Origin: Diadema antillarum
Taxonomy: Eukaryota
Reading direction: 5' to 3'
Assembly: GCF_040938485.1 (NCBI RefSeq)
Contig: NW_027272004.1
Location: forward strand, 682,001-746,000
DNA: 64,000 nucleotides
The notes under the pieces are model-generated. The model had not been told where the DNA came from. It did no database searches and was given only the letters and a program-made list of their open reading frames with translations. Position numbers and translations under genes: made by a program. This document shows, piece by piece, positions 9,600-62,826 of the stretch. Within the stretch, counting starts at the first letter, position 1. Each line of letters starts with the position of its first letter.

Positions 9600-9652
9600 T
9601 TCATTCATTCATTCATTCATTCATTCATTCATTCATTCATTCATCCATTCAT
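9600..9652. repeat. (TTCA)n microsatellite
   Basis: About 13 units visible directly. Confidence 0.95.
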
Positions 9653-11827: not shown

Positions 11828-11829
11828 TA

Positions 11830-12865: not shown

Positions 12866-13099
12866 GTTGTTTTACTGATTATAGTGAAAAAATGAAATGA
12901 AATCGATTTACCTACAAGACGAAAATTGCCTTTGACCAGCAAGTTATAGCACTAAAGAGTACGTACAAAAAAAAAAAGATTACGATTCTTGGTATCATGT
13001 ATGATTAATGTAGAAAGATCTCAGAAATAAGAAGAAAACAAAGATATTTTGGAAGTCGATGTAATATTATGTCTAGCTAATTGCTTTTTGATGTTATTT

Positions 13100-13335
13100 A
13101 GTCTTTTTGTCCACGAGGAGACTGCAAAATACAAGCTTAGCTTTTTAGCATGTCTCCTCCATTTCCTGCAACTTTAGTTTCAATTCAATTTTCATTGTTT
13201 ACTTTGCTTTTGTGATGCGTAGTATTGTCAACTTCACGTATTTTTCTTTGTTACTACATTGCATTGATGTTGTGTTATTTTGTGTATGAAAATGTTGTTG
13301 GAAATGAAATAAATGAAATGAAATGAAATGAAATG
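13100..13335 (+). mobile_element. 3' remnant of a CR1/L2-group (Crack-like) LINE
   Basis: Stem GAGGAGAC (13115-22)/GTCTCCTC (13152-59) encloses TACAAGCTTAGCTTT. A T-rich UTR, AATAAA (13308-13) and a (TGAAA)n tail follow. The layout matches the 3' end of the LINE at 53.8 kb. Confidence 0.6.
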
Positions 13336-16300
13336 CAAGACTTCATAGTTCTTCACCTACAAGTGAAACAAGTGAACCACAAAGAATCTTTAATTATTCG
13401 TAGGAGTTTGTAAATCAGCGAGATGGTTTGCACTATATAATCAGTTTAATTGTGATATGCATGTTTTCTATTAAATTCATGCCGGTTTGAGAATTTGTAA
13501 TATAATACGGAAAGATAAAAACAATAGCGCAGCAGCGGCAAGTTGGATACACAGCGATGCATGAATTTAACTTGAAGTTAAATAGAAAGAAAAAGATGGG
13601 ATATTTCTTTGATAAAAAAGTACATGATAAATGCTGAACGTATGGGAGCAAATGCTTTTAATGTCTTGAGCAGAAATACTAATGAAATAAGTGCAATAAG
13701 TTAGCGGCTACATCAGAATTCTTTGTGACATTGGGTGAGATGCTGATTGTTCGCACAAATGTTTACAGGCGTAAGCAAAAAGTGTTTCTTTGTCTAGGAG
13801 GGCTCTGAGATATTCAATGAGACGCAATATCGGCAATCTGCAAATCTATTGAGCGCTTTAATTTCAAGTGCAGGAATGCAATGTACGTCTGAACTCCGAA
13901 CGACATTGCACACATTTTCACATGTGACATAATGCTCAATGTCGCACATCCTTTATACGCAATCCAAGATCACCATATATCCGCGAGGAGACTGGAATGT
14001 TTTCTCTATTACTGTTGGAATCAATCTGTATTTCAGATTGCACCAAATTAGATTAAGAATGATCGACAGCAAGTATGACAAGTCAGCGTTCCTCCGCGCC
14101 TCTTCTCTTTAACATTGCTAGGTGTTAATGGAAATAGAAATACGTCTACGTATTACGCAGTACATGCAAAACCTACCCGATACTATCCCTTTTCTTCCTG
14201 AATAATATTGAAAACATAACATGGGAAAGTGGTTTAGACCTCGAAGAAAACTGTACAAACGAATCTTGAAATGGATTAGTTTACAGAATTTTTAAAGATC
14301 ACTTCACAATGAGGTATATTTGTTGCACTCCAAATGTGCCTATTCAGATTTGGGAGTGCGCCCAACAACATGCTGGTTTTTGTAAAGAAATCCGTTAAAC
14401 AAAAGCGTCCTTGGAACCTATGAAATGCTGCATTATTCCATTTAGGCAATCTTTACGTATTATGATCACTTCTAGAGTCTTTTACTTACAGAATGTGATA
14501 AAGAGTAATACTTTACAAAGATGTATACTCTATTAAAAGAAAGTTCCAGACCAGTTATGATAGTTAGTCTAAAAGGAAGAGTATAAATCTATCACCAGGG
14601 CAGAGAAAATGTGATCAAAATGGGATAAAAAGTAAGGCAGTTATGACATTGTAAAGTTTTACATTTTCCCCCAAAACACGTTTGAGACAGGTGATATGAA
14701 TATGCAAATGTGACCTGATGATTATCAGCATATTAAAAAAAAAAAAATCCATTGATCGTGTTGAAGTCAGTTTTCGGCAGCATAATGACATTCCTATCTG
14801 AATGACCTCGAAATGACGAACGGAAATATACATATATATATATGGATTTTAATGCATAATTGCATTTTGAGGAAAAAAAGTGGATATGCCAAGATTTTCC
14901 GAGCAAAATGCAATGGCAATTTGGGAAGCAATTGGCATCAACAGCTCACTCATTCATGCTCATTTTATTCACACTTATGAACTGTTTTCTTACAGTATTA
15001 AAGCAAAACTTCACAATTGCATAACTGCCCCTCTAATCCAATTTTCATCAGATTTTCACTGCTTAGTTGGTAAAGGTTTACTTTTTCTCAACAGCGGAAC
15101 TTTAACTGATCTTGAATTTCCGTCTAGGAACTTTGTTATAAAAAAGGTGAGAATCTTCATCAGCAGGCCTCACTTGTGCTCAAATAAAATAGGGTGATAT
15201 TTATTTGCATGCAATGTCATTCTGTCAAAGAAGTTTCGGGAATTCACATTAAAGTCGTGCAGTCAAACTTTACTGCCCGAGCATTATCTTGCATGCCGCG
15301 CTGTAAACAGTGAGCTCTTGGAATCAAGTTAGAATATGGACAAAAAGGCACGTGGACTTGAAAAATGGATGGCTGACATTGACACTGTGATGTTTTGTGA
15401 TCAAAATCCTTGCATGAAGTATCCACTCCTTCTCTGAGTCTGCCACTTGGATGTAAAAAGGCTCCTAAATGGTCGTTATGATATCGCCCCTGCACTTTGC
15501 GCGCGGCAAAAGTAAAAGAGCACAGAAAGAATGGCAAACGACACACTTTTGCGCTCGTCGGTCAAAAATGAGACTTTTGTCCTGTTCCCCGCCATAGAGT
15601 GAGTATTGAGGAGTGATGAATATTTCATGGCCGCCATTGAGTTGATTGACTCGTAGTCTGCCGATGGAAATTGCAAATAACTTAGGAATTCAAGTTGTCC
15701 GATGACGCCGGCGATGAGCATAAGCAAACTTCGGGCGCTCTACGAGACTTCGTGAGCGGAGTCACGACGTAGAATTTTTCACACGCCCCCCTTATTTTAT
15801 GTAACAAAAAAGCATCATCAACTGTGTCACCCATTCCCAAAGTCTACAACATTCTTTTATTCACGATTGTGTTTTATAAACGGTATTTGAAGTACTTGCT
15901 GGTCGATCTGTTACGAAATGGTAGCTATTCAGTAGGTGACTTGGTTTTCATGACAATTTAAACTGCTTTTAGTTTTCCTCTTTGGCATGTCTGACCTTGC
16001 CTAAAATAACGAACATAAGCTTTTAATATGGTTTGACGTCTCGGAGTGTCATGAGGACAAGACTAAAAAGTACATTAAAGTGTGTCCTTCAAACTCCATC
16101 TCCTGACATTTTTGCAATAATGTCTTGTTTGCATATCAATTTTAATGGGAAGGGAATATTTGTTTCCAAACGGGAGACGCCATTGTCTGTTGTCTGGTGA
16201 GGAAAGGACACGCATGCCCTAAGAATGATTCCCCTGCACTTTAGAGTGTTAACACGTTCATAAGATCGTTGCTATTCGGCGGGGAAGAGATAGGCCGGCT

Positions 16301-19300
16301 CGATCCGAAGGCGTGACACAACTCGGCGAGTCGACTCCCAGCCCACGTAGCTGCCCTTTCTTCCACCTTCGAACACATCAACATACTGTCTTCAAAAGAC
16401 TGACACATTCTCATCCCTCCCTCCTTCTCTCACACTCTTAAGTAGATTACATATTGATATGCAATAATGAAAAATAAGAACTCTTCAGCCTCATAATCGC
16501 ATTACTGTAGATGGTATTGCACACTAGGGAGATACAGCATGCTGGTCTTTAAATATCACCACCCCCGCCACTAAAAATCTAATGAGTGAACAACTTGGAT
16601 GTATTTTATGAACTGAGAGTCCTGTGAGGCAATACTTCAAAACGAATATGTTTTGTATCATTTCCTTTAGTCATAAATAGCTCAAAGATGTCTTACAACA
16701 GGTGCATTACCGGAAACATCAATGTACCATAATTTTGATAGAACGTGAAATAATTCAGGACCACGATGCTCGCCTGTTCGGGCAGAGTAAAATGTTTTTA
16801 CTGAAAAACAAAATGCATGATTGAAGTCACATTACAAAGTTCAAAATCAAAACATATCCTTACCTTCTTTCATGGTTGCATGTATTACAAACGTACACAC
16901 CATATTAATTTCTCGATTTGGCAAAAGCATTTTAATTGCTTTAAATAATCAAAGTATCTTACAATAACCACGCAAGAAAAAGCCACACCATAGCTGCAAA
17001 CTGAAATCATTATTAATGTAATTTCTAGCCATGATCTCAACCTGCACATCACTAAGAAGGCTAACAATAAAGTAAATTGGTTCAGAAGTGCTGGTGTATA
17101 TAATAAAAGTTTTCGTTATGCGCAGTTTACGATTATGTCCTGGTCTCCACTCCTTTCATATCTTCACAAGATAGCCATTTAAGACAGAGCTCTTAGTGGG
17201 TTCGGTCAATACATTCTTCACACGGTGTCGGCTCGGCATACACTGAACACTTCGGTTTTGTGTTTGCCCTTCTCGCTTTCTCCCTCTATCGAAAAAAAAA
17301 GAGAAGACAAAATTAATGGCGACATCTCAACACCTTTCGGGAGGTTTTTTTTCGGCCGAGACCATTTTTTTAAAGTCTTGATTGCTTTAAATGTTGATGA
17401 GATCTCTGGTATGTCTGATAAACTACTTTGTACTCTTTAAACTTAATGAACAAAAGAAATGCAAATTACCCAACACTCTGTTATTGTCATAAATTGGATA
17501 AAATGAATGTGTTAAGCACATGACTACTGGTATCCTCACTAAGCTGCATATCAGCGTTCAAGCTTTGTTACCATCGTAGACAAGTGCTTCCAATATCCTA
17601 CCTGCACTGTATTTTTTATTAATTGCATTTCAAAATGAGAGTGATTACCTGGGCATGACATGGATGGTTGGTTTGAAAGAAACGTATAATCCCCTTTAAG
17701 GAGGCTTGGACTCGAGAGACCGTGATGTTATGTGTGGTCGGTCACGGGCAATATAAGGTATGTTATAAGAGACGCCATTAAAACGTCGCATACAACCTGT
17801 CGCTTAATTCTATGGAGGATTCAAAGCGGACGAAATTGCCAATGTGTCGCCTAGGGCCATTGTGGCGCTTTACCTGAGTTCCTGCGGGACGGTGAAAGTC
17901 TCTTTCGCCAGGGTATATGACGTTCTTTAACTCTGCCAACTCATCATCTAACTAACTCCTGGTGTATAGTGAGAGGACGCGCAGGTGGCGCCGGGCTGCT
18001 AACAACCCGTTATGAACTCTCGCGATATTATTCCGTGTGGGAAGCGCATTTTGGCGGAAATTGAAATTAGTTATACGTGGTTTCAGGCAAATGGGATATT
18101 ATTACTCCACTTGTAACAAACATCGCAGACGGCCGTGCGGGTGGGAAGGCGGAGTGGGCAATGAACCAGTGACGTCACAAGTGGTGGTTACCTCTCTTTC
18201 CCACGGACTATCCCACGAAAATCGAGGAGCGCTCCGTGTAATGGCCTCTGGCTAACCAAAGATCGAATCATGCGGTCTAAAATCTTGATCTTAATTCTGA
18301 AACATGCCGTGTCGGTAACACGCAGGATCCCCGAATTACTAAAATGGATCAACTTTGGGAATTCGTGTTTCTGTGGCGGAATCCCAATACACGTACACTC
18401 ACAGAGAATGACATAATGAGCTAATAGAGAAATAAGCGTGGTTCTAAGTCAGTTTTCCTGGTCACGTACTTTGATGCTATACATTCGTCGGCAAAATAGG
18501 GACTTATTTTATGATATTTGTGTATTCGGTGCTTTATTTTGTTGTTTTCTTGGCATTTTAGAATTATTTGGATCTGAATTTTACTATAATCGTTTCCCAT
18601 AGGTCTGTAATCGGACTTTAATATATAACTACTATTTAATGAGAGGGACAAAAAAAAATCCATTCCATGCCTCTTGTTGATAAAGTAATAAGATTCGATA
18701 TGACTCCTGATTTGATTGCAGTATATATTTATTACAGACCTTTTACAAGTAGATAGAAAGCATTTTTTTTTTCTGATTTCTAGCATATGTGTTTATTGCT
18801 TTGTATAACATTCTCATGCATAATTTTGATTATTATTGACAATTTCGGCAGTTTATTTATTCATTGTCTATGTTTAAATGATTATTGTATAATTCATTGG
18901 AGCTCAATGTTCAGTTGAAAGAAAATCTTCTAAGGAAAGAGGAACGTATTTCATTACACATCTAATTTCAAAGTTTTCTTTCAGATGTACACAAGGATGA
19001 TTACTAGGATTTTGTCTCACACTGCTCTACATCTGAAAATCGCAATTATATCCGTGTCATCGAGTTATCCTAATAAGCCAAGATAACAGGCAACTCTACC
19101 CAGATCGCAAGTAATCCAGAGCCCGTGGGTTCCGTGGAATTCCATCAAAATTGTTGTATTCATTTAAAAAAGAGATGTTCGGCTAACCATCTCTTCCAGG
19201 AGAAGCTCCGCAAGCGAGCTCTCTACTTAGCTGCGACCGCCCGTAGCTCCTCAAATTCAATTACGAATCTTTAAGTACTTCTTATAATGCCGCCTCGCTG

Positions 19301-20802
19301 GTTTGGTAACAAGTGGTAGTCTTCCTACCCATCAGCTTCTTTTTTTTTTCAAGGGACTTTTATCCTTTTTTTCCCTTCCCCTCTCTCTATCCTGATGCGC
19401 CACAATTAAAAGAAAATGCCCAGTAGAAATCTGCGGGCATGACACATTGCCCGGATTGCTCCTTAACCGACAAAACAGCTATTTGAGATGGCGTATTGCA
19501 CGAAACCTATCGTCGTGACCAGTGGCATCATTACTGATATGTTCTTCTTTGTGTGGTGACGATTTTGCTTTTGTCAGCCTTGTTTTTCCCCATTCTAGAA
19601 TTGTCTCTAGCTCCGCAGATGACTTGATGAATATCGCCAATGCACAAATGCCTCACAAGCACATTAGTCGGCTTATCCCCCGCGTTATAGTGCTTCAATT
19701 CTTCAAAGCCTCGAATGGATTTAAAGAAATAATTTCCTATCAACATTCCTATCTTTTATGTGAGGAACTGTGTTTAATTATTGATTGTCAGTAGAATAAG
19801 GGTAGTTTTTCTTGGAAGAATTCTCCTCCCCCCCCCAAAAAAAAAAAAAAAAAAAATCGAACTCATCTTTGGAAATTGACTGAAGACTCGCGCGACTTTC
19901 TCTCTCTAGTTTACGATATTATCGATTTGAATTGGCTCTCAACCTGACCGCACAAATGAAGTTATCGATCGCAACCCGTTGAATTAGCCGAGAAAATGAC
20001 AAGACTGTGCAAGCGCTTGTAGTCTGTTCACCCGGGGCGTGGGGAAAAGGTGAGATAGAAGATTGGATTATTTGCAGAAATCTACAAAAAACACGGTGAG
20101 CAGAGGTAAGAGCACAAGCAAATCAGCATATCATAAAAAACCACACTCCAGCTGATAATCAGCTGATTAACTTGTCTGATTTGTATTCATAGCAAATACA
20201 TGGGGAGAGGGATTCTATCTATCAATTTGTGAGTCCTCTGACAATGTTTTCAAGTCGAGATTTTCTACACGTATATACGTGAACGAAAAAAAAAGCAAAG
20301 ATTATTCTCAGGTCAGTGCTACAGGTCACTTTTATTTAGATTTTCCCGCATTTCCACAATGCCTACCTCCAAGGGAAATAATGAGGCAAGGCCATGCTTG
20401 AATCGGGGAGATGGCAAGCTTCTTTTTAACAATAAGATGGAACAATCAATTGTCGGGTAACGTGACTATTTCCCCCGAGTGAGAGACACTCGCAGGGTAT
20501 CACTTTCGCTCCTAACCGTGTGGTTCGTGGACGGGATTATATCCATGACACTCGACAATCTGGCGTATAGCGGGGTGATGTTTGGTTGGAGAAAAGATGA
20601 CTGCTGTGTCGATGAAAGGGCCATATTGTCAAAACGACTTACGCGATCTGATACGCCATATTTCATTTCGAGCTGTGGGAAGAACCCATGAGAATTCTCA
20701 CGTTGCTTTCCCCTCGGGAGTCACAGGGTAACAAAAGAAACAAAAATGCACCTTTACATGGTGCGCATAAAGAATGTGTCGTCCGTCTCCAGCAATATTG
20801 TG

Positions 20803-20883
20803 TGTGTATGTGTGTGTGTGTGGTATCTGGGTGTATGTACGTGTGCATGTGTGTGTTGTGTTGTGTGTGTGTGTGTGTGTGTG
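20803..20883. repeat. Compound (GT)n/(GTAT) microsatellite
   Basis: Seen directly; it generates the spurious HT/CV-rich ORFs at 20663-20940. Confidence 0.9.
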
Positions 20884-23800
20884 CATATTTGGCATTGTTT
20901 CCGTAGCACTCTTTCTTCAGTGACTGTCATCCTAGTATAGTAATGACAAAGATGAATTCTCCGAGGTCTACTCTGAATGAAATTATCTTGCAGACTTTAA
21001 AACTTCAAAAATCCTGTTGATCAGAGGCAATGTTACACAATATAGCACTAGAAAGGAGTTCTCCACGTTGGTGGCAACCTAGTGTAGATGTGACAGCTCA
21101 GAGGTATAGCGGAAAATGAAGGAAAAAATATCTGTGATTTGATATCACTTAAACACTTTTTGACCTTTACACGAGCTTCTGATTGTAATCTCTATGTGGT
21201 ATTTTGTTATGTTTTTAGGTTTCCTTACCGCCTGTTGGAAATTTGTATGTAGTTCGATTTATTGTCATATTCAATGAAGAGAGAGAAAGTTTCCCTGCAT
21301 TTATGGTGATTTGGAAAAATTCAACTTGAGTTTGAGGGGATGGTATGGTTCTGGTTTAGATGGGGATCCAGATTATAAATTTTTGCGAGATAATACCAAA
21401 CCACTTATTTGAAATGATAAAAAAAAACCACAAATACAATTTTTGGACTGAGATGTACAAAAACAAAGATGTCCTAATAAAAGGTGGGCAAGACCACCTT
21501 TTATTTCAACCACTTTCGTTTACTCTATTTTGGATTTTCTTCAAGTAAACTGTTAATTCCTCATAGATAGGATATTATCCTGATGATAATATTTCAAATA
21601 AGTGGTTTCTAATCATCTTAAAAATTATTTGACATCTGAATCCCCGTTTCAACAAATTCGTACCATCCCTTTAAACATTAATTGCACAATAACTGCGGTG
21701 ATTTCTTTAAAGGGTTCAAACGGAGCGTGTGTGTGTGTGTGTGTGTGTGTGAGTTTGTCCGGATGTTATGTTGGTGGGGTCTCGATCCATGCGTGTTGTT
21801 CTCATTATAGTTGTATTTAGCGAACTGTTCAAATCAGAATTGTGTAGAACAGAACCCACATGTGCACATGTGCAGGAATTAAGTTGAATAATCTAATGAG
21901 TTGAATAATGTATTTTTTGTCAATGGTGTGTACTTGTCATTTAGTTATATTGTTCTATTTCCTTCTGTATCATGTATGTTTGTAAATTTGGAGACTGTTA
22001 AGATAATTTTCATGCCTGAGTATATGAAAATAATTGATTTGAATTGAATTGAATTGAATTAAATTAAATTTAAAACCATTAAGTGTTTAACATTACCGTT
22101 TTTCAATCACAGAAATTAAATCTCTTTCCAGAATCCCAGAAAAGAATATCCAATGTGTGATTGAAACTTCCGGAGTTCTTATACATATATATTTATGCCT
22201 GTGATTCAATGCGTCGCTGATTGTGTTTAAGAACATGTATCACTTTCTTTTTTATAATTACTTAATCTATGGTAAAGTCTTAGATGGAAGTGTTGTTAAC
22301 ACGCGTGGAAAGTATTCAGATTTCATTTCACGAGATGTGGGCAATGGTATTCCAGTGATCAAATTTGATGAAGCGGTTCGCTTTCACTTCACTGCTTTTC
22401 TCTACTTGCAAATTTTCCAGCGCAATCCAGCGCTTCTAAATTTGCTAAAGGAATACAGGATTTACAGCTTCGATATTTCAGCTGGTTTGGAGTTCGTAGA
22501 GGTGGATTTGTGTCGCTCGAAGTGATGAAAAGAATCAAATGCTCTCCTCCTCTCTTGGCTCTCGCTATGCAAAGATCTTTGGCCTCGTCAACAGGCGATT
22601 TGGACGGCTGTTTCGCGGAATAAATGCACATTTTAACCCAAGGCTACGAGAGCGAGTCACTTATACTTACTAGCAGACGACTGATGCCGAATGATAGACG
22701 ATATATCGATCGATACCATGTCGACAGGGCTAAGCGTTTAGAGGATCTGTGAAAGAAACAATGTCGCCTGCCTCTCCCCAGCCGAAGGGGAAAGGTGTTG
22801 AAGCAGGTTGCTTTCATTCAGGCGTTGTAATTGATCCATCTTGACTGTTAAAGGTATTATTTCTTACAGCGAAAGTATCCAGACAATTTTGTCAGTGAAA
22901 TGCAATTGACATTAATACGTATATGAGTAGTCATAAAACGGTCATACCTTTATGGTTTTCATAATAGGAAATTCATATACACTCATATGTTTAGAATGCA
23001 TTGTTACTTAATTTTGATCATGTTTATTGGAGAGGTCTGTCACAGCCTATAATAATCGAAACTTAAGAAGTAAGAAAGGCTGTGAAGGGAAGAGATAATT
23101 TAATAGAGTGATTTACAGTTGGTTGGCAATGAAGTTGATTGCTCCACTGAATGCAGGACATGAGTGAGTAATGGTTGCCATATCATTTTACGTTTGCATA
23201 GATAACAATCAATCAAACAATAAATCAGGAAACCCCGTAGTGTAAATCTGTAATATGGCACGATGTTTTGCCGATATCACTTGTGGGCTCAAATAGCATT
23301 ACACGCAATACATGATAACATGAGTACAGTTGATAAACAGAATTATAAAATGGGTTCAAGAATGTAGCCAATTGGAAGCGCTGAATTGAGTCACGTGTGC
23401 GTGCATTAATTTCTCACTAACATGCACGGCCTGACGTCACAATGTTTACACTAGCAGTGCGCCCTCAATTAGTTGTTACAAATGCGTCGCGCGCTACTAT
23501 ACGCGCTGTCAAACCTGTAAACAACTTCTAGTTCGGGCTGCTGCCAGCCGGCCTTTCTTGTGCATACATGTGGCGTACGTATACTCTTATACGTACACAT
23601 CTCACAGTACTTATATGTGCGGGATTTCCGAGTGCGAAGTGCGTAATATGTTTGGGACGAACGTCTTCGGACATCTTGACTTTTTGACTTGAGCGAGTGC
23701 TGCATGTAGCTGACTGGTATTGACCCACAAAGGTACGTGAAAAATGCTGTTAGTTTTCGACCCATTTTATAAAACAAATGATGCACAGGATTATTTCGTG

Positions 23801-25296
23801 GCGTTTGTGGAGATGCAGCTCACACTCGGGTATTTACAATGTAGTGCAACATGCACTCGGCTTCGCCTCGGGCATGTTTCACAATTGTAAATACCCTCGA
23901 GTGCGCTACATCTCCACTAACGCACTCTATCCTGTGCATCATTTATATAGTATAGATTCTTCTTTGTTCGTCACTTGCCATCAGCCGCTCCTATAACGCA
24001 AGCAAGGACATGCGTTGCCGTGATCATGACGATGGTGCATGCTAAATGAAAGCTATACTCAAGGAAATCAGCAAGGCTTTCCAGAATTAGCCTGTCACTT
24101 TCAAACGAGCACTTGGTATTCTCGAGCAACCAGCAAAATCACATTCATTGAATGCCAATCGGAGCCGGGGCAATAAAGTACACACATGGTGGAGCGAGAA
24201 CGAACCAGTCACCGAGACGATTGACTCCGGGACTTCTTGAGTAATAATGCTGACATTTCAGGCCAAATTCGACAGCATGAGAAGACAGACAGGGATGCTG
24301 GAACGAGGAACAGGTGAAATTCCCCAACAATCTCTACCAACAGTCGTCACAGTCAACGCGCATTAAAATCCCACTTCAGGCATCCAATGCTGGATCTGAG
24401 GTATTTTCACAAGAAAAGAATAAAAAGAAAATCAGACAAGCGTACCTCTTGATCGAATGTACTTGCACTTTTTGACAAATAGACATGCACCGACGTCTTT
24501 TGAAATTCCAGTCATCTAGGAATAAGCAGGCATAATCGGTATTAGTTCCTGGTAAATCTAAAATGCAAGGGCTGAAATACATCAAATAAGAACCGTCAAT
24601 TCTGTCACTCTTCATTCCGCGGCTGGCGAATTGCTTTTTTTTTCCTTTCCTGTTTGGAATCTGGAACGTGAAATGATGCTTGCCGCTTGTCAGACGACAA
24701 GACACGTGGGAAGGAAAACACTTACCATGCAGCGCCAACTCCGACGACTCAACTACATCTGAATTATCTCTACCGTGTTGGTTTCGAAGATTTCGAAGTG
24801 TTTCATCTCATTGAAGCGTCTTTCTTCCGTTCATCGTGACATCTCGATTAAACCGAATGACTCTTTGAGATATATGAATACGAAGTGGAGAACATCACTA
24901 TTCATGTAGTATAAGTATTTCAGTTTGAAGTGACAATTTTTAATAATCTTCTATCTAGTCTCATTGTAAGTCGTCATTGCCTTTATTATATACTGCAATC
25001 TAAATCATAATCATAATTACAACCAAACGGGTCTGTCAATAAGTGTCAGAAAGATCAGCGGAAACCATGTAGTAACAGTTTATAATTATAGCAATATCAC
25101 AGCGTCATTTCCGAGTTACCAATTTTTATATGATAACGATTTAACCACCGGGCAAGATTCGAAGCGGGACCTCCTTTGTTCTGATGATAAAGATTCCTAT
25201 CCGCCATCATATCAGGGTTTACCCTTATTTCACTTTGACAAAGAGAATCCGAGTTAAGAATAATAGGGGAAAGAACACAAATGATGTAAAGAATCG

Positions 25297-25608
25297 GGGT
25301 CATCCCGCTAAACCGACACCCACGAGTCATACAGCCCACGAGTTCGACATTGAAAACAGGCCTATGATTCATACAGCTCACGAGTCATACAGCCCATGAG
25401 TTCGACACTAAGTAAATAAAGCCCATGAGTTCCACACTAGGTAAAAAGCCCACAAGTTCGACAAATATCTCATGGCCCTTGTTAGCTTAGTGTCGAACTA
25501 ATGGGCTGTATGACTCGTGAGCTGTAGAGCTCATGGGCTTTATGACTTGTGAGCTGTATGACTCGTGGGTTGTATGACTCGTGGATGTCGGTCTCGTGAC
25601 GTGCACCC
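25297..25608. mobile_element. Foldback-type MITE, copy 1 (GAGTCATACAGCCCAC/GAGTTCGACAC subrepeats)
   Basis: GGGTCATCCCGCTAAACCGACACCCACGAGTC...GACTCGTGGATGTCGGTCTCGTGACGTGCACCC; the tandem subunits of the left half are inverted in the right half. Confidence 0.85.
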
Positions 25609-25757
25609 ACTGAGTTTCCTCAAAACTGTCAGTTTAGGAAGGACATCGCAATGAACAACGTAGACGGCCGTCTGGCGTCCTCGCTCATATCATCCTTAAC
25701 GATGACATTTTTTTTTCAATTTTGAGCAGACAAATAACCATAACATGAAGAGAAACG

Positions 25758-26017
25758 GGGTCATTCCACAAGACCGACACTCATGAGTCATACAGCCCAC
25801 GACTCCTACAGCCCACGAGTTCGACACTAGGCAAATAAAGCCCATGAGACCAACACTGGGTAAAAACAACCCACGAGTTCGACAGATACAACACAGAGTT
25901 TACGCCGGTCTCGTGGGCTTTGTTTGCTTAGTGTTCAACTCATGGGCTATATGACTGGTGGGCTGTATAACTCGTAGGCTGTATGACTCGTGGGTGTCGG
26001 TCTCGTGACTTGCACCC
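25758..26017. mobile_element. Foldback-type MITE, copy 2, with a 9-bp target-site duplication
   Basis: AGAGAAACG|GGGTCATTCCACAAGACCGACAC...GTGTCGGTCTCGTGACTTGCACCC|AGAGAAACG (TSD at 25749-25757 and 26018-26026). Confidence 0.9.
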
Positions 26018-26966
26018 AGAGAAACGACCCCTCAATTAACACATAAATGGGCAAACAACACTGAACATCCCAAAATGTCAACAACATTCACCAACCAGCC
26101 TGCCAACGAAAACTAAAAAAACACACACACAAACACACGCACACACATTAAGGTACCGAAACCTCTTATTACGTACGAAATCATACTGCTGAAATGTCGA
26201 ATGTATTTCTCTACATGTTTGCTAGTTTGCTTTAATATTAGGTTTTATTTTACGTGTACTTTTGAGTTTGCTGAAATGGCTGTCGTGAGTGCTTTAATTT
26301 GATAAAGATTTTAAATCACACTATAGGACCACAATATTTGAAGTAATTTGATAGAATGAATGAATTAAGTTACGAGCACCAAACATGAGAAGTAAGAGAA
26401 TACTTTATGCAATGACAGACCTGACGACTGTCAATCCACCCTGATTAATCTTCAAGCATTATAAAGGCAAAAATACATCTTGTGGTTTCACAATTAAAGT
26501 ACATCACTAATTGATTAATGAAAAGGGAGAGAAAAAAGGAATTGAGAAGATGATTAATAGAATGAAAAAATTTCCATGGTTCTTGTTTCTCCAAGTGTAA
26601 TGATAATACAAGAAATACAGCAACTACAAACAATTTAATGGCACATATATCAACTGCATAAGTAAGTACATGATAAGTGTACAATATGAGACGATAGTGT
26701 TTGCTTAAGTCCTTAAACGTGTAAGTGCGTCTGAAAGTTTTAAGTGCATGTATTTTCTCACCTGCATTAACGCAATCTGTTTTGATGTCATAGGTTTTCC
26801 TGCCCAAATTTGATAAATACTTCATCTGACTTTGGTAACAAGCACTCATGGTCGGGCAATTCTCCTTGGAATACTCGCCTTTTCACGTAGTTCAAACTAG
26901 CTTGTAAAAACCTTTAAGTTTTATGTTTTAAAAAAGTAATCATTTTCGAAATCACGTCATTTAAAT

Positions 26967-27124
26967 GGATGCATGCCATGAGACTGACACCCACCAATCA
27001 TACAATCCAAACAAGGCCGATGAGACCGACGTCTCATGGGCCTTGTTTGCTCAGTGTCGAACTTATGAGCTGTATGACTCGTGGGTTGTGTGACGCGTGG
27101 GTATCGGTCTCGTGGCGTGCATCC
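26967..27124. mobile_element. Foldback-type MITE, copy 3 (short)
   Basis: GGATGCATGCCATGAGACTGACACCCAC versus the reverse complement of the right end, GGATGCACGCCACGAGACCGATACCCAC; same internal subrepeats as copies 1 and 2. Confidence 0.85.
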
Positions 27125-27709
27125 GGAATGTCAGGGAGTGGTTGCACCACTGGTGGCGCTTTGCCTGATGCAACGACATTCAGTAACCAAGCTTCGTACA
27201 TGTTTTCCTCTGTTCTTTTTTTTTTTTGGGGGGGGGGGGGGAGGGAGGGGTGATTGAATCCTCTCATTTACACCTTTGAGTGAAAGAAGAAAATCCGTGA
27301 AATTGCATGACAGAAGTTTCGGTGTATGCCTATTTCAAGTATTTGATTTTGATATCGTTGGTCATTTGAATTCGCCCCAGATTGAATGTAATGTCTAATA
27401 GTTTTGTATATTTTTGATTAGGGAAGAAAAGAGCAATATTTGTTATCTTTGATAGATGACGAAAAACCGATTACGTCTCCTGCATGATCATACAGCAGAT
27501 ATACTTTATCAATGCATGTTCTGTTTGCAGCTGTATCTGACAATAATTTTGTTTACTTTTTATCTTAGCTATGTTCTGGCGATCAAAATAAAATAAGTTT
27601 AAAAATATCAGCAATGTGAGTTAATAGTTTTGAGAGTTCAAAAGTATTCTATGCTTTCCGAATTTGCAGTGAATGCATGGTTATATAATATTACGGCACA
27701 CAAACAATT

Positions 27710-28078
27710 TTGTTTGTTTGTTTGTTTGTTCAATTCCATCTGAAAAGATGGCTGGATAGCTCATATCCAGCTAAGCTAAGCTGGTCTTCCATGGGGTCAC
27801 GTTGGATGTGAGGTGGGACCACTCCACCGGGTTAAACAACCTGCTCTTTGCGATGAATAGATGAAGTGGGATCTTTTACGTGCATGAGTTGTGACTCTCT
27901 AATACACGGGACTTCCATTTCATGTCCTATCCGAGGGACAGAGTGTTTTGCCTCTTGCTAGAGGGGACGGTATGGTTACACACAACATTGCTCAGTCCAG
28001 ACTCGGGTTCGAACCCGAGCCCTTAGTAGGTGCAGGATCGTGAGACAGACGCGCTCCCGACTGAGCCAACTCACCGCC
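27710..28078 (-). mobile_element. Full-length tRNA-derived SINE with a Deu/Nin-type central domain
   Basis: On the minus strand: A box TGGCTCAGTCGG (28068-28057) and B box GGTTCGAACCC (28015-28005). The central CTCTGTCCCTCGGATAGGAC...GTCCCGTGT...GCACGTAAAAGATCCC...AAGAGCAGG...CCCGGTG resembles the Deu domain as I recall it. A 3' stem GCTGGATA/TATCCAGC and an (AAAC)n tail follow. Confidence 0.85.
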
Positions 28079-31000
28079 TTACGATGGCGTGGCAATTCTT
28101 GCGATTTAGAAAGAAAAGTTTGTATTGTCGAATAATTTTGAATATTGTCTTATGGGATAGAACAAGAGGCTTGAGAAATAATTTTCTTGAAAGCATGAAG
28201 TATCCACCATTGATAATACAGAACACATATCTGGGGTAATTGAGTTGTGCTACCCATCATAGGACTTATCACGCCGAATCTACACCTCCGCTTGGAGGTA
28301 TTCATTTCTCGATTCTCCACGCAGTACTGGCAATGATTTTAAAAATAACACACAGCCTGTTTGACAGCATTAACTTAACCTACTTTTCTATTTTTTTGCA
28401 CAACCACACATAAAAACACACACACACACACACACAAGCAAAAATAGACGCTCTAATCGCATTAATCTCAATCGTCTTTCACAAATTCTTTAACAAAAAA
28501 TGTTCCAAAAATATTTTTTCTTTCTTTTTTTTTCTACCGTGATATCGAATATAGAAAACATGGTAGCAACACAGTTTATCTATGACTACTTTTTGGTTTT
28601 GCCTTTTCTTAGATATTCACGGAAACCCTGGAATAGGCAACCACAGTATTCTTTTACCCCCAGGGACCAGATTTATTCCCTCGTTCACGTTACGTATTTA
28701 GATCAACCTGTTCTTCTACAGGCGTGTTCAAACCACTTCAAGACTGATACATTTAACTCTTACACAAAAAGCTTTTGTCTGCATGAAGGAGTGTGTAGTT
28801 CATCTTCATACCCACTTTTTAGAATCCTACCCTCTTTTCCTTTACTATCCCACGCGCAAGAAGGATATACATGGAGGAAAAGTAGCACCTTTGCCATGCT
28901 GCAGAGCTGAATCGATGTTTTCTCCAAACTTCAGCTCTTTGGAAAAGACACAGAGAGACTGGTGCCATCACGAATCTCTCTCTCTCTCTCTCTCTTTTTC
29001 TCCATCTCCTTCTCTCCCCCTTGCTTTAAACCTTTTTTCCCCCTTTTCTTGCTTTTGCTCAATGAAGTCGAGTTCTCTAGTACTGGCAGCACTCAATTAG
29101 GCTGACGTCATAATGGTGACGCCTCCAAATCCTATTGTGAAAAGAACGCTCTTGTCGTTCGTCGCCACCAGAAGTACTACGCACCACGTGACCAATGCTG
29201 TGTGTTGGTTGACATGGCGCCATTTCGCCATGGGGCATGAAAAGGGGTGCAGGGACACATGTTTATGTATTTATAGAGAGAATATTGAAACATACATAAA
29301 CACTTCAGAAAACAAAAGGAGGCAAATAAGTGCAATTATCCGGATAATAGTCATGATGATAATGATAATGAGAACAATGAAAAGAGAGATAATATTCAAA
29401 GTCTAATGAACGTACGAGAAATAAGAATGTGAAAATTTAACGAAATCAACAAAAATGTTTCCTTAGTAAAGAGAATACATTCTGACTCAATTGAAGTTAG
29501 TTGCGAGTAAAAAAGTAGAGTTCAAGCCTTAGCAATATAATCGTGCTGATGGTGGGCAAATTAAAGAAAAGGGCAGATCCTGAAGGAACCCCCAAGAAAA
29601 ACAAACAAACAAAGAAAAAACAAACAAACAAACAGGACATTATTCAAATGCAAAATTGAAGAATCTTGAAGAGTTGCAAAAACAAAAAAGAGTGGGTAAA
29701 ATCCATGGGAAAAATTCCTTTCAAATTATGATTGATAACGGTTTAACCCATATGCAGGAAGGTGGGTCCCACCTCCCTGACCTATGTAACATCCATCCAT
29801 AACTGAGTGTTCTTGGAGAAACGCTGGATAACCATCGTCACCACACTAAGGCATTTCTACAATTAAGATGTCCCTTAACCCCGGGCAGCTGCCATGTTAG
29901 GTTTCCAGTCCTTTTGTGAGACTATGATCTCTTATTTTGATGATTGTGTGTGTGTGTTTGTGTGTGTGCGTTTGTGTGTGTGTTTAGATCTATAGCAACT
30001 TGTTCTTTATTCAGTCATCTTTAGAGCATACATTCATTTATTTATGGCATATATCTCTGAGTCAATTTCAAGTTATTTCTTAATATGTGTCTTCACTTTC
30101 AGTCTTCCAGACATTTCTGGAGGAGTTATATTTTCCGAGGCATGGCAATTGTTCATCCTGCATTTGATATTTGAAAATTAGTTTAAGGTCAATTACTTCT
30201 TGAGCATTTTTCTGCGGAATATGTTTATCATGCCTGCATTACGGCTCATGGTTTGCTTTTACTAAAGAATAAAAAGGTCAGACTGACTAACAAAGACTTA
30301 CACGAGTGTTGTATTCACTTTTGCGAGGAGGCGGGAACAGAGCGCGACGGCAACCTCTCATTTCATTCCTAGCAATTTTGAAACCAATTTTGGATTATAA
30401 GAATGAAATGAATTTGGTTTACGGAGAGAGTAAAGTTAAAAACGTTTTACTCTTAAAAAAGGAAAATCTGTACGATCTTGTCTTATCTAATACGCAAACA
30501 TAACGCACACGTACACACACACACACACATACAAGAAAACAAACCCTCTGTACATTGTGGATTGTGTGGCACTGAGTAATCTACGCTCAGCGTATTCAGT
30601 CCAAGTTCAGCTAGCCATCATAAACTATTCATATATTTGCTGGTGATACTCTCTCGTGCGTATAAGTCGCGAAATCGTAGCATGGTTTTAATGACTCAGT
30701 TACTAGGAATTGCTCCAGGCTGGAATGAATATGTGGAAACAGACAGGTGGAAGAAACTGAATGTCAATAAGGTTTTTGTCTTTTTTTTACTGCTACGTCC
30801 ATATTGCTATGTTGGGTTTCTCTTCTTGAGTTTTCTAGCACGAGCTAAGGTCGAAGACGTTGCATCATCCACGCTAATGCGCTTAAAAGCAGAAGGCAAT
30901 ATCTCTAATGAGTAGAATGTCAAACAACTCATATTTCTTACAATCGGAAAACAAAGTTTGAAATCAAACATACGAAAGAACAGTTTGGCTCGAAACATTC

Positions 31001-33221
31001 ACGTATACCCTTGACCAGTATGGGCAAAGAAGAGTTATTTCTGAAGATACAATTACAACGCGTAGCGTTGCAACCTTGCTTTTCCACCATGCATTATCCT
31101 TGTGTATCAAATTCTTAAACATACGTTAAAACAATTTCTATGTTTCCGTAAGCTTTACTGAGTTTCAATCGTAGACTGTTTTGCGGCATGTTATATGATT
31201 GCTTGACAGAATAGAATGGGGAATATACGTCAGTCCTGCAAAAAATAAAAACCTCAAAACAAAACACAAAAACCTCGGTTCTTTAATTAATAGATAAAAT
31301 ACGAATCTGTTATCATATTTCCCAAGTTCAATGAGAAAAGTAAGTTGGTAAAAAGGTTAGGCCGAATGATCCTTGGATATGTCGTGTTCTGCCAAGAATA
31401 AGCCCGGCTATATCAAAAATATGTATTTACATTGGCAAGAGAGAAAAGGTTGCATTGCTCAAAATAAGAGCGTAATTTCATCATCCCAGGGACATCAAAG
31501 GCAAAGCGACCACAAAAATTGTACGCCGTGCTTTATGCGCTTGACGATACCATGTGTTGTGTGTGTCTTTTGGCGCGTGCCGACTTGATCAGGAATCTAA
31601 TTAACAACCAATCAATGCGCTTGAGCTAGACAGCGCGCGAAAAAAGCACAACGTTGATTTTGTCTCTTTCGGCTGTGATTCTGAGGTCGGCCAAAACTCA
31701 TTGGTGCAGAACAATAGCGTTCGTCTTTCTCGAGTAATTTTCATTTCCACAAAGAATCTAAAGAATTCTCTACTCGAATATACTTCCTTTAATCAATCAA
31801 AATGTGCAATATTTCATCCAAGGGCAGATAGCATTTTTGTCTAATATGTGCTGCGTTTTCTCGAATTCCAGTGCTACCATTATTAAGAAAAGTTACTTGA
31901 ATCTTCCGTAGAATAACTAAATTGTATTCATAAATCTGAAAAAATTAAAACCCCAAGTAATGGTATACACTCCTTTTGATAATCATGAAAAAAAAGTACG
32001 TTCTCGATAGCGTGTTGTGAAGCAAGGAAACTAATAAAAACGGCAACAAATGATTGATCCTTGAAATATGGTAGAATTCGTGGTTTCTTTTTCAAACTGA
32101 TGAATGTTTTTTTTTTTCTGAAATCCTTCAACTCGGATTAATGTGGAAGATTGCAGGCCTGTTGGACGTTTTTTTATACTTGTCTTTAATACTTAGTTTC
32201 CGTGTGAATATGAAATATTCTTGACTGTGAAAATTTGTGACAGCCGGATGATACAATGTCTGTGAATGCGTTTGTCTGTTGGCCCCCCTGTCTTTCTCTC
32301 TCTGTGCGTGTTTTAGTGTATGTACTAGGAAGCCATTATATTAACATTTTGCGCATCACTTCCTCAAAAGTCTTCAAAAACTGATACAAAATACACGCCT
32401 ATTTGACAAGCACAATTGCCAATTCACTGTTCTTCCAGAACGTCAATAGCGAATACCTAAGTTTCTCTCCTAACAACATGTTTCCTAATTCATAAGACTA
32501 TATAGAATGAGGGCCATGTGATATGCCCGGCAAAGTATCGCTGATTATTGAATTCCAGAACGTTGAATATTCAATTGAACGATCACAAACAAACAAACAA
32601 ACAAACAAAAACAAAAAACACATAAACTTTATTGTCATTTTTTTACTCTGTACAAGGCAATTACTCTCTAGATTAACCCTTCACTTCACTGAATGTGTAA
32701 TGAGAAAAGTCATGAAAACAATTATAAAACTTTGAATACCGTTCAGACGGGTATTAGATCTCACGGAGCCACGTCGTGCCACGCTTTCTTGCAATCACAT
32801 CTATAGAATAATAACTATAGAAGACCGTATATATCTCCCATCAGACCGGGTTGATTGCGCATTCCCTGGGAGTATCGCACATAGGTACCACAAAGTAGAG
32901 TAGTCTAATGTAACATGATTACGTTTATACAAACATTAGGAAACACCAACAACAAAATTTACTATCAGTACGTACAGGTTACGGAGAGACTGAGTATGAA
33001 AAGAAGTAATAATTGAGCCATTCTCTTACTTTCAATTTACGCATTGGCTTATTACATTGTAATTGTTTGACATAACCTCACACGCACACACACACACACA
33101 CACACACGTACACACACATACTACGTATGTAAGTACAAGCGCTTAACGCAGCCTTAAATAGTCATGATATCTAGCTAAGCGATTTCTTTTTTTTTTTTCA
33201 TTCGCTGACTTGGAAAGTACT

Positions 33222-33400
33222 GGGCCCCGTTGCTAGAAACTTTGCGTTTAAACGCAACTTGCAACTGATTGTCACTGGCCAATCAAAATCATTGTTGCAT
33301 GCATGTCTTCTTAATAGGGCAGACCCTGAGCCAATCAGAATGGTTGTTTCAAAATTAGCAATTATTTGCAATTGATTGCAACTTTCTTGCAACGGGGCCC
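33222..33400. mobile_element. 179-bp MITE, probably PIF/Harbinger-like
   Basis: TIRs GGGCCCCGTTGCTAGAAA / TTTCTTGCAACGGGGCCC match at 17 of 18 positions. The superfamily is inferred from the GGGCCC termini only; I saw no clean TSD. Confidence 0.85.
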
Positions 33401-36400
33401 TGATATATCAAACGTACCATTCTTTCATTTTCGTAACTCTTGAATGCCACGATGATATCTAATCATTGAGAATTTATAATATATCTTGTAGACAAAGCTT
33501 TTGGTTCAGCATTTTCAACCGACGCAATGACAGGATATAGAACTAATTTGATAGGGCAGGCCACGAATGGAGCCACCTTTGTTGGGCAATGGTAATCAGA
33601 AAATAAATATAGATTGATCTACGGTAGATGAGAAAGTGTTGTAGTCACGTCCGTTAGATCTACCATCTATCATCTCTGTCTGAACGTTAGTTTTAGATAG
33701 CGTGTTTATTTACTCGTGGGAGGAAAAGGTTCTCTTTCCGTGATGGTAGTAACATTTTAGCTTCACTTATAAGGTTTGCCATTTAACATAAACACTTACA
33801 GAATACATTCTGAAACTGAAAAGATTTCACTTAGATCACGCTGTTAGATGGACTTCTGTCTGTGAACTCGAAACGGCTAATAGAGTCTATTACATGCACA
33901 TACCCACACTTACGTGCGCGCACGCATACAGGGCTTGACATTAGCGATGACCCGTGGTTGCCCGGGGCCACTAAAGTTTGGTGTCGGGCTACTACATTTA
34001 TCTTTTTGTGGGCCAATTGAGCCATTTTTAATTTTTCTTGCCCTGTATGAGCAAGTTTAAAAAATCTGTCAATCCTTATCTTTTAATTGTATTTTGAAGT
34101 TCATTCCAATGTCGCAAAGCAGTTTCTCTTTGTACGTAAACATATTCATTATTCATTTTATGCATGCATGTATGTATGCAAACTGCGTATACTCGACACT
34201 AACGTGTTTCGTCTGGTGGTCTGTTCGGGTCACTAAAACATCTAAATCATGAAAGAACCGAATACTTCTTTTTTTCTCTCTGAGAGGAACAGGTCGAAAA
34301 TTAAGTTAGCCGCATATAATCTGAAAGAAAACATTTTTCAACTTGTTGGATATCAACATTGACATTGTTCGCGGGTATGATGTTCGATACCTATATCGAC
34401 ATGCAGAGAAATCTTTCCACTTCTCTGAGACTTTCGTTTCTCTATTTAACAACAAGGCAAATCTACATTTTCTTTTCTTCTGGTCCAGATTCCCACCTCA
34501 ATAGCCACACGCAGTATTATGTGCCCAAAGGTTATTTTCAATTCAGTGTGAAGTCATGTGAAGTGTAAATCAAATCATATGAATAGATATGTCTTTCTAT
34601 ACTCTCTCCGTCTCTTTGTCGCATTTTCAATTGATAAAGAAGGTGAATATAACAATAACAACCAATAACAAAGGTATAAGATGGCCTTTCTCTCTCTCTT
34701 TTTTCTTGGGGGGGGGGGGGGGGTGGGATTCACCGGATCTAGATATTGAATGAAAATAAGCTGTCATGAACTAGATAGCGCCATTAGAGACTGCTTGGTT
34801 TGGAAATACCAGATACAGCCAGGAACCACCGTACAAGAAAAGGACAAACACACACACATACACATACACACACACAAAAAAACAACATACGAATATCTTC
34901 AGTCGTAAACAAATTATTTAGAAACAACGTAGAAACCAACGAGTTTTGTCCATAACTTATGCTCACAGTCGAAGAAAATCACCTGAAACTTGTTACAAAT
35001 ATTTCTATTATGAAATGAGATTATTCGACCAAAATGTAACCTGTATTTTGTGAATGAAACCGTCATAGATTGCAAGGTACAAGTAATGAAATGTAACAAA
35101 CGAAATTATTGATTTATATGCACAGACAAACACATTCTGAATTGGTATGTGTAATACCCTAAGATTCATCCCGAATTTTTCCTGAAATTAAAGTTTATCA
35201 TTGTGAATCCTTATTGACCGCGCATAGAATATTTGGTGCTATGGAATTTCATATATTTTTAAAAGATATAATGCTACGGAACTGCACTGGGCCTTTAATC
35301 CCATGTGGCTGAAATGGCGAATCTTGTGAATTCTTCCACCGACGTTACGCCGTCCAGAGTAGAGAGAGAGAGAGAGAGACAATTGATCCCCGATCCCCCG
35401 GGGGACCAACGTTCCTACTCTCAATGGGATGTAAACGTGGTATTGTGTCAGAGTATTACTATCATAGTAATTGATGCCCGCAGGGGACGAAGCCGCTCGC
35501 CATACCTGAACGATTGTTATGATCACGAGACCTTTTTTCTTTGATGGTTGGTTTGATATTTGCCTTCCTCCAACGCTTGCGGGAGAAATGACCGAGAAAC
35601 CATATGAAAACACTCGATGGTTTGATGATGTATTCATAGCTATCTTCTCCCATAAGTATTTTGTCTTCCTAAAGGTTATCAGAAGACTCCCTTGTGACTA
35701 TCAATGCCGTAGGAAAAAGACAGCCGCAATTCTATTCGATAGACATGATCGAACAGACCACTTAGGGATATAAGGATAGCTAATCGCTGCGGATACTACT
35801 CATGATGTTGTTTTGAAATACAGCAATTATTCGCCCATCTAGGTCAAAGCATCAGCCTTGAATAACAGCATTTCAACATTCTCATCTTATTTCCCTTATG
35901 TGCTTCCTACAACGTCAGACTTTGTTGATATGACTACTCAGAATACTAAATCCTGGCGAATAAACAATTCGCTATTAACTTTCCCAAAGATGTCTACTCC
36001 CTTCCTCGCAGCGAAATTATGAAAAAATAAAATGCGAACTTTGATTTAAACATATCAATGCAATTAAAACATACGATTTCATGATATCTTGATATCTTTT
36101 GCAGAAATAATCCGCAAATGCAGACAGTCTGTAGCAATTCAAGCTTAGTAGCCACGTGTAATTTGTTGTATTATGCACACGTTCGAGCTCCAGTGCATAT
36201 TTTCTGCTCATTTTGATGTTTTCATCTAGGGAGAATTGGTATGACGCTTCATTAGGATTGAAATATGTCTAATGGACAGAGGATAAGCCGTCCAGCCAAC
36301 ACCTAGTCCTTCCCACAAAAATGTTTCAACTCATAGTTCAGAATAAGGAGATGTCATATAAGAAACTCTGCTTCCTGTCTTTTCTGAATATAACTGACTT

Positions 36401-36441
36401 TCTTTTCTTTGTTTGTAAAGGAATTAATATAGGTCTCTTAC

Positions 36442-36570
36442 CTGTTCTTCAATCTGAGGGAATTCATCGGCGTCCAGATCCACGACGGGCAGCCCTAGGT
36501 CGAGATTCCTGCCGGCGGCGACGGCCAGAATGGCAGCCAGGATTGCGAGGTAACACGTTGTTAGATTCAT
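36442..36570 (-). CDS. SS2: First coding exon (signal peptide plus start of the acidic pro-region) of a somatostatin-type neuropeptide precursor (echinoderm SS2, Spnp16-like)
   Basis: ATG at 36570 with A at -3 (CACGACAATG). 43 codons: MNLTTCYLAILAAILAVAAGRNLDLGLPVVDLDADEFPQIEEQ. Hydrophobic core followed by an A-A-G cleavage-like site. Canonical phase-0 donor CAG|GTAAGA at 36442/36441. GC-rich codons against an AT-rich background. Matches my recollection of the S. purpuratus Spnp16 N-terminus (MNLTTCYLAILAAILAVAAGRTLDLGLP...); no database search was run. Confidence 0.85.
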
Positions 36571-36879
36571 TGTCGTGGAGCGACGGAACACGATATGTTA
36601 CAGAGGAGAAAATGCACACATAGAGAGTCAAAATTTGTGCTCTTAGTATGGGAGTGAGTCTACAGAGAGAAATTCACTTTTTGTCGTCGCCAGAACGGCA
36701 AACTGAGTTGCGTGGAGCTCGTCTCTTCAAACAGGTGGGGAAGTGAGGAACGATTCGCTGCAAGTGATTCGTACTCTAGTTCTCGTGTACTGAAGATTCG
36801 ACCAATAGGCGCTGTGATATCTAACGCTAGAGCTGCTGGCGCGCTTGTTAATAAAGGACTCGAAACGCAGGAGACATTT

Positions 36880-36887
36880 TATTTATA
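36880..36887 (-). promoter_or_regulatory. TATA box of the SS2 gene
   Basis: Minus-strand TATAAATA about 310 bp upstream of the ATG. An Inr-like TTCGAGT lies about 27 nt downstream (about 36860) and a CCAAT lies at 36897-36893. Confidence 0.65.
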
Positions 36888-37029
36888 ACATTATTGGCGT
36901 TATCATGTGCCCCTGAGGGATGCACACACGGCGATAGAGCGGGAAGCAGTCATTAGGGGGCGTGATCCAACAAAACGCAAAGGAGCGTCGCGATTGACAC
37001 CTGCTTGACGAGCACTACTCAACCTGACC

Positions 37030-37091
37030 AGTCACGACGAAGCCACGCCCCTTTCAGAGAGTCACGTGAAGATGACGTAGGAAATACGTCA
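37030..37091. promoter_or_regulatory. Proximal promoter motif cluster: GC box, E-box and an inverted pair of CRE-like sites
   Basis: CCACGCCCC (37043-51), TCACGTGA (37062-69), TGACGTA (37073-79) ggaaa TACGTCA (37085-91). Confidence 0.55.
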
Positions 37092-38005
37092 GCACTTATC
37101 TGTTGAAGACACTGGTGGGCTGGTGGATAGAACAAACAAGACGATTATTAGTTTCATGCGTTGTGGCTATAAGTAAGCCTTATGGAACAAAACGATAAAC
37201 ACAGATTTATCACTCGTCAAACCAATCGAAGAACCGGAACTTGAACGGCCCAAGATGAATAAGGAGGCATGCGACACACACTTTGGGTGAATTATATGTA
37301 TGTTATTACAGGCGAACTTCATAAATTGGGTCATCCTTACACATATTATTCAAAACATGGTACAAAAGAAAGAAAATAAAGATATAGATTGATAGATATA
37401 TGAGATAAAATGCTTGGATGAGTAAACTGTTCCTTGAACAGAAACATGACATACTTTCTGTAAAATCATAACTAGAGGTTTGCACTTTTATACCAATGAA
37501 GTCATAATTACAGTCTTTGATGGATTAAAAAAGTTTAAAATCACTGGTTAAAAACATTTTACAGTCGCTAAAGAGATTGGGATGTATTGAAGGGCTGCAT
37601 AGATGTAGAATGATTAAATGAAATTGTTATTATACATAAGGAGGTCAAATCAATCTGGCTTTGCTCGACTGGAGTGCAAAGGGCTTAACAACATCAACAG
37701 AACTTCTAGAACTTCTAGGACAAGGAGTAATCTGCTCTCCCCGGCCCCCACAGAAACGAAGAAAAAAATTGCTGATATTTCAATATTTCATGGATTTAAC
37801 ATTAAACTCAAAATTATGTGGCCTTCCGCACTGTCCTCCATATAATTAAGAAATCTCCCTGCTTGACTGCAAAATTTCATTGATTATTTGTTAAAAGAAA
37901 AGCGTTGTAATGAACTCTAAAGAAAGTTTGATCTTAGTAGTTTTCAACAAGCTCGAAAACAAAATTGAAGGTTAAACAGCCTTCATGTAATTATGATCTG
38001 TTTAA

Positions 38006-62790: not shown

Positions 62791-62826
<36 letters not shown>

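Follow-up and report, generated by a model that had tools for sequence, protein, structure and literature searches.

First coding exon of an SS2-type (somatostatin-type) precursor gene and its 59-kb intron in the sea urchin Diadema antillarum

Positions 36442-36570 of the analysed stretch of Diadema antillarum DNA (64,000 nucleotides, G000:C1116:682001-746000; in the following termed the window) almost certainly represent coding exon 1 of a Diadema gene that is orthologous to the echinoderm precursor gene of SS2 type (somatostatin-type, Spnp16) and consists of two coding exons separated by a single phase-0 intron of 59,041 nt. The gene is located on the minus strand, its downstream DNA therefore lying below contig position 682001, and the peptide-encoding second exon resides 22.6 kb left of window base 1. 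A preliminary description of the window had recognized the exon, and missed its counterpart because the window ends that far short of it; the apparently missing exon is a window-edge effect and not biology. The term "hidden" chosen there for the gene was overstated, as public annotations of two other urchins, D. setosum and S. purpuratus, already carry the orthologue without naming it. What the window contains is part of an ordinary orthologue of a neuropeptide precursor that was known before. The present assignment supplies the correct name (SS2/somatostatin-type precursor) for the "uncharacterized protein" entries of these two species as well as a predicted SS2 peptide for a keystone urchin of Caribbean reefs.

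Exon structure and coding constraint

Exon 1 codes for 43 residues (MNLTTCYLAILAAILAVAAGRNLDLGLPVVDLDADEFPQIEEQ) and comprises the start codon, a hydrophobic signal peptide, the core of which (CYLAILAAILAVAAG) is directly readable, and the 23 initial residues of the pro-region. Residues 1-21 are the same as residues 1-21 of the S. purpuratus precursor, and according to the -3/-1 rule the signal peptide is probably cleaved after AAG20 (Gly20). As stated in the preliminary description, the 43 codons beginning with ATG are directly followed by a phase-0 GT donor (GTAAGA) and the exon is below the usual ORF cut-off, the program-made ORF list containing just a 55-aa ORF at this site. Contig C3, which carries the second haplotype, and the two D. 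setosum copies share the donor motif GTAAGAG. A chance ORF can be dismissed, because two database proteins match the exon product over their residues 1-43 in gap-free alignments (single comparisons, E = 8e-16 and 3e-28), with 34/43 identical residues (79%) in S. purpuratus XP_001176809.1 and 42/43 in the D. setosum protein. A literature search with words of the exon-1 peptide revealed no published paper printing it.

Exon 2 was searched for in the 1.75-Gb genome with a back-translated pattern for DIWKGRG, a motif of the published Spur_2 and Ovic_2 peptides. Five sites were detected, versus none with the reversed control. One of them (C1116:659189-659208, minus) shares contig and strand with exon 1 and lies in an open frame ending with ...NDDFTKRGRRPTRKICINDIWKGRGGGLRCN-stop (the C-terminal end of this frame was also read as ...KRGRRPTRKICINDIWKGRGGGLRCN before the stop codon), while its twin on contig C3 is located 58.6 kb downstream of a 99% identical exon 1 copy. 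The frames at the remaining three sites are short and unrelated. The exon 2 product reads KLDHQSMRDLVSERLW...FTKRGRR-PTRKICINDIWKGRGGGLRCN up to the stop codon and is preceded by an acceptor composed of a polypyrimidine tract and CAG (ttcttttgtcttgttatctccttttgcag|AAA, phase 0). Within the window, a six-frame scan for WKGRG or C..[FI]WK..C peptides was negative. It used the patterns W[KR]G[KR]G, C..WKG..C and, ahead of a stop, C..[FIVLYW]W[KR]..C as well as dibasic site plus Cys-Cys plus stop; pattern matches considered as a peptide exon inside the window were of low complexity or devoid of the motif and were discarded. The earlier finding that positions 1-36441 are free of a WKGRG-type peptide exon and of gaps thus holds for the entire window with respect to the exon, and N runs are confined to 41915-50439.

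Upstream of the gene, four such N runs of 132-209 bases are found (41915-42046, 42252-42412, 49466-49615 and 50231-50439), the last of which overlaps ORFs at 50053-50539. Further upstream, ORFs of 140-220 aa at 62209-62871 are overlapped by a dispersed repeat (62330-62690), dozens of copies of which (67-92% identity) occur on many contigs.

Table 1 Coordinates of the gene and of sequence elements in and around its intron (window positions unless a contig is named)
Feature	Position	Strand	Remarks
Exon 1 CDS, SS2-type precursor	36570..36442 = C1116:718442-718570	minus	129 nt, 43 codons, ATG AAT CTA ... GAA CAG
5' splice donor GTAAGA	36436..36441	minus	phase 0, intron starts straight after codon 43
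Intron part in window	1..36435	minus	36.4 kb of 59,041 nt; continues past left edge to C1116:659401
Exon 2 CDS	G000:C1116:659167-659400 = L007:1479-1712	minus	77 codons and stop; same contig and strand as exon 1
Promoter-proximal/5'-UTR block (putative)	36731..37230	minus	500 bp, 97.4% identical to D. setosum
TATAAATA	36880-36887		317 nt before ATG, in promoter-proximal block
Two inverted TGACGTA CRE-like heptamers	37085-37091 and 37073-37079		in promoter-proximal block
CACGTG	37063-37068		in promoter-proximal block
TGACGTCA palindrome	29103..29110		conserved intronic block, >=96% identical; in place in D. setosum
TGACGTCA palindrome	18170-18177		block >=96% identical; in place in D. setosum
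TGACGTCA palindrome	1673-1680		block >=96% identical; in place in D. setosum
TGACGTCA palindrome	23432-23439		within 601-bp insertion absent from D. setosum
TGACGTCA palindrome	38006-38013		in window
TGACGTCA palindromes outside window, in place in D. setosum	C1116:680224-680231 and 660046-660053		

All searches and comparisons were performed exon by exon, separately for each exon product. Only two proteins were retrieved by a word search with the exon-2 product: a D. setosum "uncharacterized protein" of 120 aa, 100% identical to exon 2 (residues 44-120), and S. purpuratus XP_001176809.1 (LOC753211) of 119 aa, 76% identical to exon 2. The two exon products add up to 120 aa (43 + 77), and there is no space for a further coding exon, because the exons tile the homologues from residues 1-43 and from 44 to the end.

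Across its full length, the D. setosum protein (P0001; GCA_964275005.2, OZ188200.1) is identical in 119 of 120 residues. The coding sequences differ at 8 of 363 nt, 7 of these differences being synonymous, versus about 11% of the aligned intron positions, and the gene is therefore under purifying selection; in this comparison, such a divergence pattern marks a functional gene. Both splice sites are conserved in D. setosum, and no residue of mature peptide or cleavage site differs between the two Diadema genes, as compared with one residue in S. purpuratus. The single non-synonymous change replaces Cys6 of the window gene by Phe6 in the signal peptide of D. setosum. From this change one might argue for a locus which is structurally intact yet silent or decaying, i.e. 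an unexpressed pseudogene in the making. Such a state is, however, very unlikely in view of open frames, two canonical splice sites, seven synonymous changes to a single non-synonymous one, the unaltered mature peptide and cleavage site, and a promoter-proximal block conserved to 97%; moreover, Cys6 is also the state in S. purpuratus. For the functional gene, homology predicts the splice junction, the start of transcription and expression. The D. setosum gene model begins at the ATG and stops at the stop codon, and may be a homology-based or ab initio model rather than an RNA-supported one.

Assignment to the SS2 group and predicted peptide

One of the two somatostatin-type precursors of S. 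purpuratus is the former Spnp16, and the SS2 precursor of brittle stars has been labelled "Spnp16-like" (Zandawala et al. 2017, PMC5627052). XP_001176809.1 reads ...EQ|NMEHQSMRDMVSARLWS... and terminates with KRGRRPARKICINDIWKGRGGGLRCN; its C-terminus is identical to "Spur_2" of the SS2 alignment in the supplement to PMC7536072. The continuation of the S. purpuratus precursor given in the preliminary description (NMEHQSMRDMVSARLWS) is present in this protein, as are the motifs KRGRR and ICINDIWKGRG, and the suggestion of an urchin other than S. purpuratus was correct, the species being a Diadema. The same applies to the proposal that exon 1 belongs to a somatostatin-type (SS2/Spnp16) precursor: in addition to the agreement of the exon itself with both homologues, exon 2 matches the rest of them.

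Three features described for the group are found in the Diadema gene. According to Zhang et al. 2020 (PMC7536072), the SS2 genes of S. purpuratus and A. planci harbour a single phase-0 intron in the N-terminal part; here, the intron is placed exactly between codons 43 and 44. Somatostatin-type precursors contain a single C-terminal peptide with a dibasic site before and a stop after it (PMC5627052), corresponding to ...FTKRGRR|PTRKICINDIWKGRGGGLRCN and stop. Finally, two cysteines flank the [F/I]WKGRG core (C-INDIWKGRGGGLR-C) and an SS1-type GRFxP core is absent, as in the comparison set Spur_2, Ovic_2, Arub_2 and Apla_2 from the alignment in the supplement to PMC7536072. The characteristics of SS1/allatostatin-C-type genes, i.e. 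the motif C-x-GRF-x-P-x(4)-C and a second, phase-1 intron, are not displayed by the gene, which has a WKGRG core and one coding intron. Neither exon product matched a Pfam family (0 families at E <= 10), and no precomputed Pfam domain is on record for the D. setosum or the S. purpuratus homologue. The gene is therefore placed in the echinoderm SS2 group as defined in the literature and not in the Pfam somatostatin/cortistatin family.

The last exon of the paralogous SS1/allatostatin-C-type precursor, containing RCMGRFAPYMLNC and reading ...GQNVRQTRGRCMGRFAPYMLNCKRSSGATI up to the stop, was observed elsewhere in the genome in two haplotype copies (C321:838261-838295, plus strand, L024; C399:1451557-1451591, minus strand, L025). 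It is preceded in frame by a long low-complexity (SIYL)n stretch, presumably intron.

Exon 1 could in principle belong to a different secreted protein, the likeness being merely that of one signal peptide to another; signal peptides do share composition, and a Pfam match is lacking. Three observations render this explanation highly improbable: the identity is not limited to the hydrophobic core and includes residues of the pro-region (LDLGLPV..FPQ..EQ), the alignment ends precisely at residue 43/44, where exon 2 begins in both homologues, and the 43-aa query finds only the window locus and its allele in the whole genome. Both proteins retrieved are SS2 orthologues. Among the eight papers containing both words, none was found on a Diadema somatostatin-type peptide, neither word appearing in title or abstract.

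The SS2 precursor of Diadema would be a prepropeptide of 120 aa consisting of signal peptide, acidic pro-region, KRGRR cleavage site and one C-terminal peptide, PTRKICINDIWKGRGGGLRCN. Upon entry into the secretory pathway, the signal peptide would be removed, probably after Gly20, and, judging from the family, prohormone convertases should cut at KRGRR to yield a single peptide of 21 residues (PTRKICINDIWKGRGGGLRCN). By analogy with the starfish peptide ArSS2, a disulfide bridge is predicted between Cys6 and Cys20 of this peptide. For A. rubens, PMC7536072 reports that the orthologous ArSS2 is the ligand of three somatostatin-type receptors (ArSSR1-3), which it activates, and that it has a relaxing effect on the tube feet and the cardiac stomach. 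Following the same analogy, the Diadema peptide may be released from neurons and act via somatostatin-type G-protein-coupled receptors as an inhibitory, muscle-relaxing signal; neuronal expression and receptor activation are thus to be expected of it.

The intron, its copies and conserved non-coding blocks

With its intron, a protein of 120 aa is spread over approximately 59.4 kb. In the four assembled copies of the gene, the intron measures 59,041 (C1116), 58,429 (C3), 60,344 (L010) and 56,185 nt (L011), and no N runs are present between the exons in any of them. The D. setosum loci L010 and L011 were obtained by exact-protein look-up, by which no genomic locus was on record for S. purpuratus. 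About 91% of the Diadema antillarum intron aligns collinearly with that of D. setosum, the identity amounting to 88.7%. Neither a nested gene or transposon (ORFs >=120 aa had no Pfam match) nor an Rfam family was detected in the intron. Three intronic stretches (10354-11827, 23348-23948 and 27706-28080) are without counterpart in D. setosum; they represent lineage-specific insertions or deletions and are probably derived from mobile elements.

The preliminary description had offered the alternatives of an intron exceeding 36 kb and of a misjoin or a lineage-specific loss of exon 2, of which the first proved right. That exon 1 is an orphan relic of a gene split by misassembly or deprived of its second exon can be practically discounted: the only point in favour is the lack of a peptide exon within the window, against which stand an intact exon 2 with canonical acceptor on the same contig and strand, uninterrupted sequence between the exons, the same layout in the other haplotype and two D. 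setosum copies, and an intron whose sequence agrees in order and to 88% in identity between the two species along about 91% of its length; misjoin and exon loss are excluded because four independently assembled copies share this layout.

A second collinear copy of the whole locus is found at G000:C3:1219208-1277999 (loci L015-L021), in which exon 1 differs only synonymously and exon 2 not at all. C1116 and C3 are collinear over 92 kb or more, up to the right window end or beyond. Non-coding identity amounts to 97.0% between C1116 and C3 and to 97.8% between L010 and L011 within D. setosum, versus about 88% between the window genome and D. setosum. The initial assembly of Diadema antillarum has been described as "inflated", with 1.75 Gb, 2964 contigs, 84.4% duplicated BUSCOs and 2.52% heterozygosity (Majeske et al. 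2026, PMC13511894). The two contigs are accordingly interpreted as two haplotypes and not as paralogues. Two paralogous SS2 genes were considered and rejected, with copies of about 97% identity being collinear over at least 92 kb and clustering by species, in an assembly of about twice the haploid size. In D. setosum, the gene occurs twice on one chromosome record in opposite orientation and 1.2 Mb apart (L010, OZ188200.1:1999740-2070446 reversed; L011, 764769-831316); these copies share 97.8% identity over 64 kb without any difference in the coding sequence, and represent either a haplotig that was retained and scaffolded into the chromosome or a genuine inverted duplication of recent origin.

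Conservation within the intron is very unevenly distributed, with some 40 conserved blocks. Out of 528 non-overlapping windows of 100 bp, 58 (about 11%) are at least 97% identical to D. setosum, versus 1.4 expected under a uniform rate, a post-hoc comparison with one species diverged by about 12%. Identity between the haplotypes is 99.72% in these conserved windows as compared with 97.71%. A fully open stretch of 144 codons in the block 24376-24738 (minus strand), the only conserved block open throughout in this genome, was rejected as coding, since it contains stops and indels in both D. setosum copies. The CRE-type sequence TGACGTMA has 13 matches on both strands of the window, versus 3.8 ± 2.5 in 100 dinucleotide-preserving shuffles, none of which reached 13; this motif count is likewise post-hoc. 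Its palindromic form TGACGTCA occurs six times in the whole intron, with about 0.7 occurrences expected from base composition, and for five of the six intronic palindromes both D. setosum copies have the site at the corresponding position. Upstream of the start codon, a conserved block with further short motifs (Table 1) would have a promoter-proximal/5'-UTR role.

The conserved non-coding blocks and conserved CRE sites lend modest, indirect support to the former portrayal of the intron as packed with regulatory modules. That the 59-kb intron as such constitutes a conserved cis-regulatory landscape of the SS2 gene is a speculative and rather unlikely extension of these observations. With its length of 56-60 kb retained in two species and its wealth of conserved non-coding blocks, the intron makes the gene a candidate locus for studying the regulation of echinoderm neuropeptide genes.

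Comparison with known somatostatin-type systems

The D. setosum gene resembles that of the window in donor, acceptor and an intron of 56-60 kb, and differs in Phe6, in intronic DNA of about 88% identity and in its presence twice on one chromosome record. With SS2 (Spnp16) of S. purpuratus, the Diadema gene shares the 43-aa exon-1 product, the phase-0 intron, the pro-region, KRGRR and the C-terminal 21-aa peptide with its two cysteines and the core ICINDIWKGRGGGLRCN. The mature peptides differ in one residue (PTRK in Diadema against PARK), and the protein of Diadema (order Diadematoida) is one residue longer and diverged in the pro-region. ArSS2/ArSSP2 of A. rubens is likewise of SS2 type, with an FWKGRG core between two cysteines in a single C-terminal copy, and differs outside the core (RAKNARCMADFWKGRGLVDC); its function has been characterised, whereas the Diadema peptide is known from its sequence.

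The relation to vertebrate somatostatin/cortistatin is more distant, given the lack of a Pfam family match and a longer Diadema peptide with a GRGGG insert. In addition, the Diadema intron is far larger than the introns of mammalian somatostatin and cortistatin genes. The vertebrate somatostatin promoter is a classical target of CRE/CREB, and its CRE finds a likeness in the conserved TGACGTCA sites of Diadema, which in contrast to the vertebrate situation are intronic or distal and putative. Should these CRE sites make expression dependent on cAMP or activity, the control of somatostatin-type genes by CREB would be older than the split between echinoderms and chordates.
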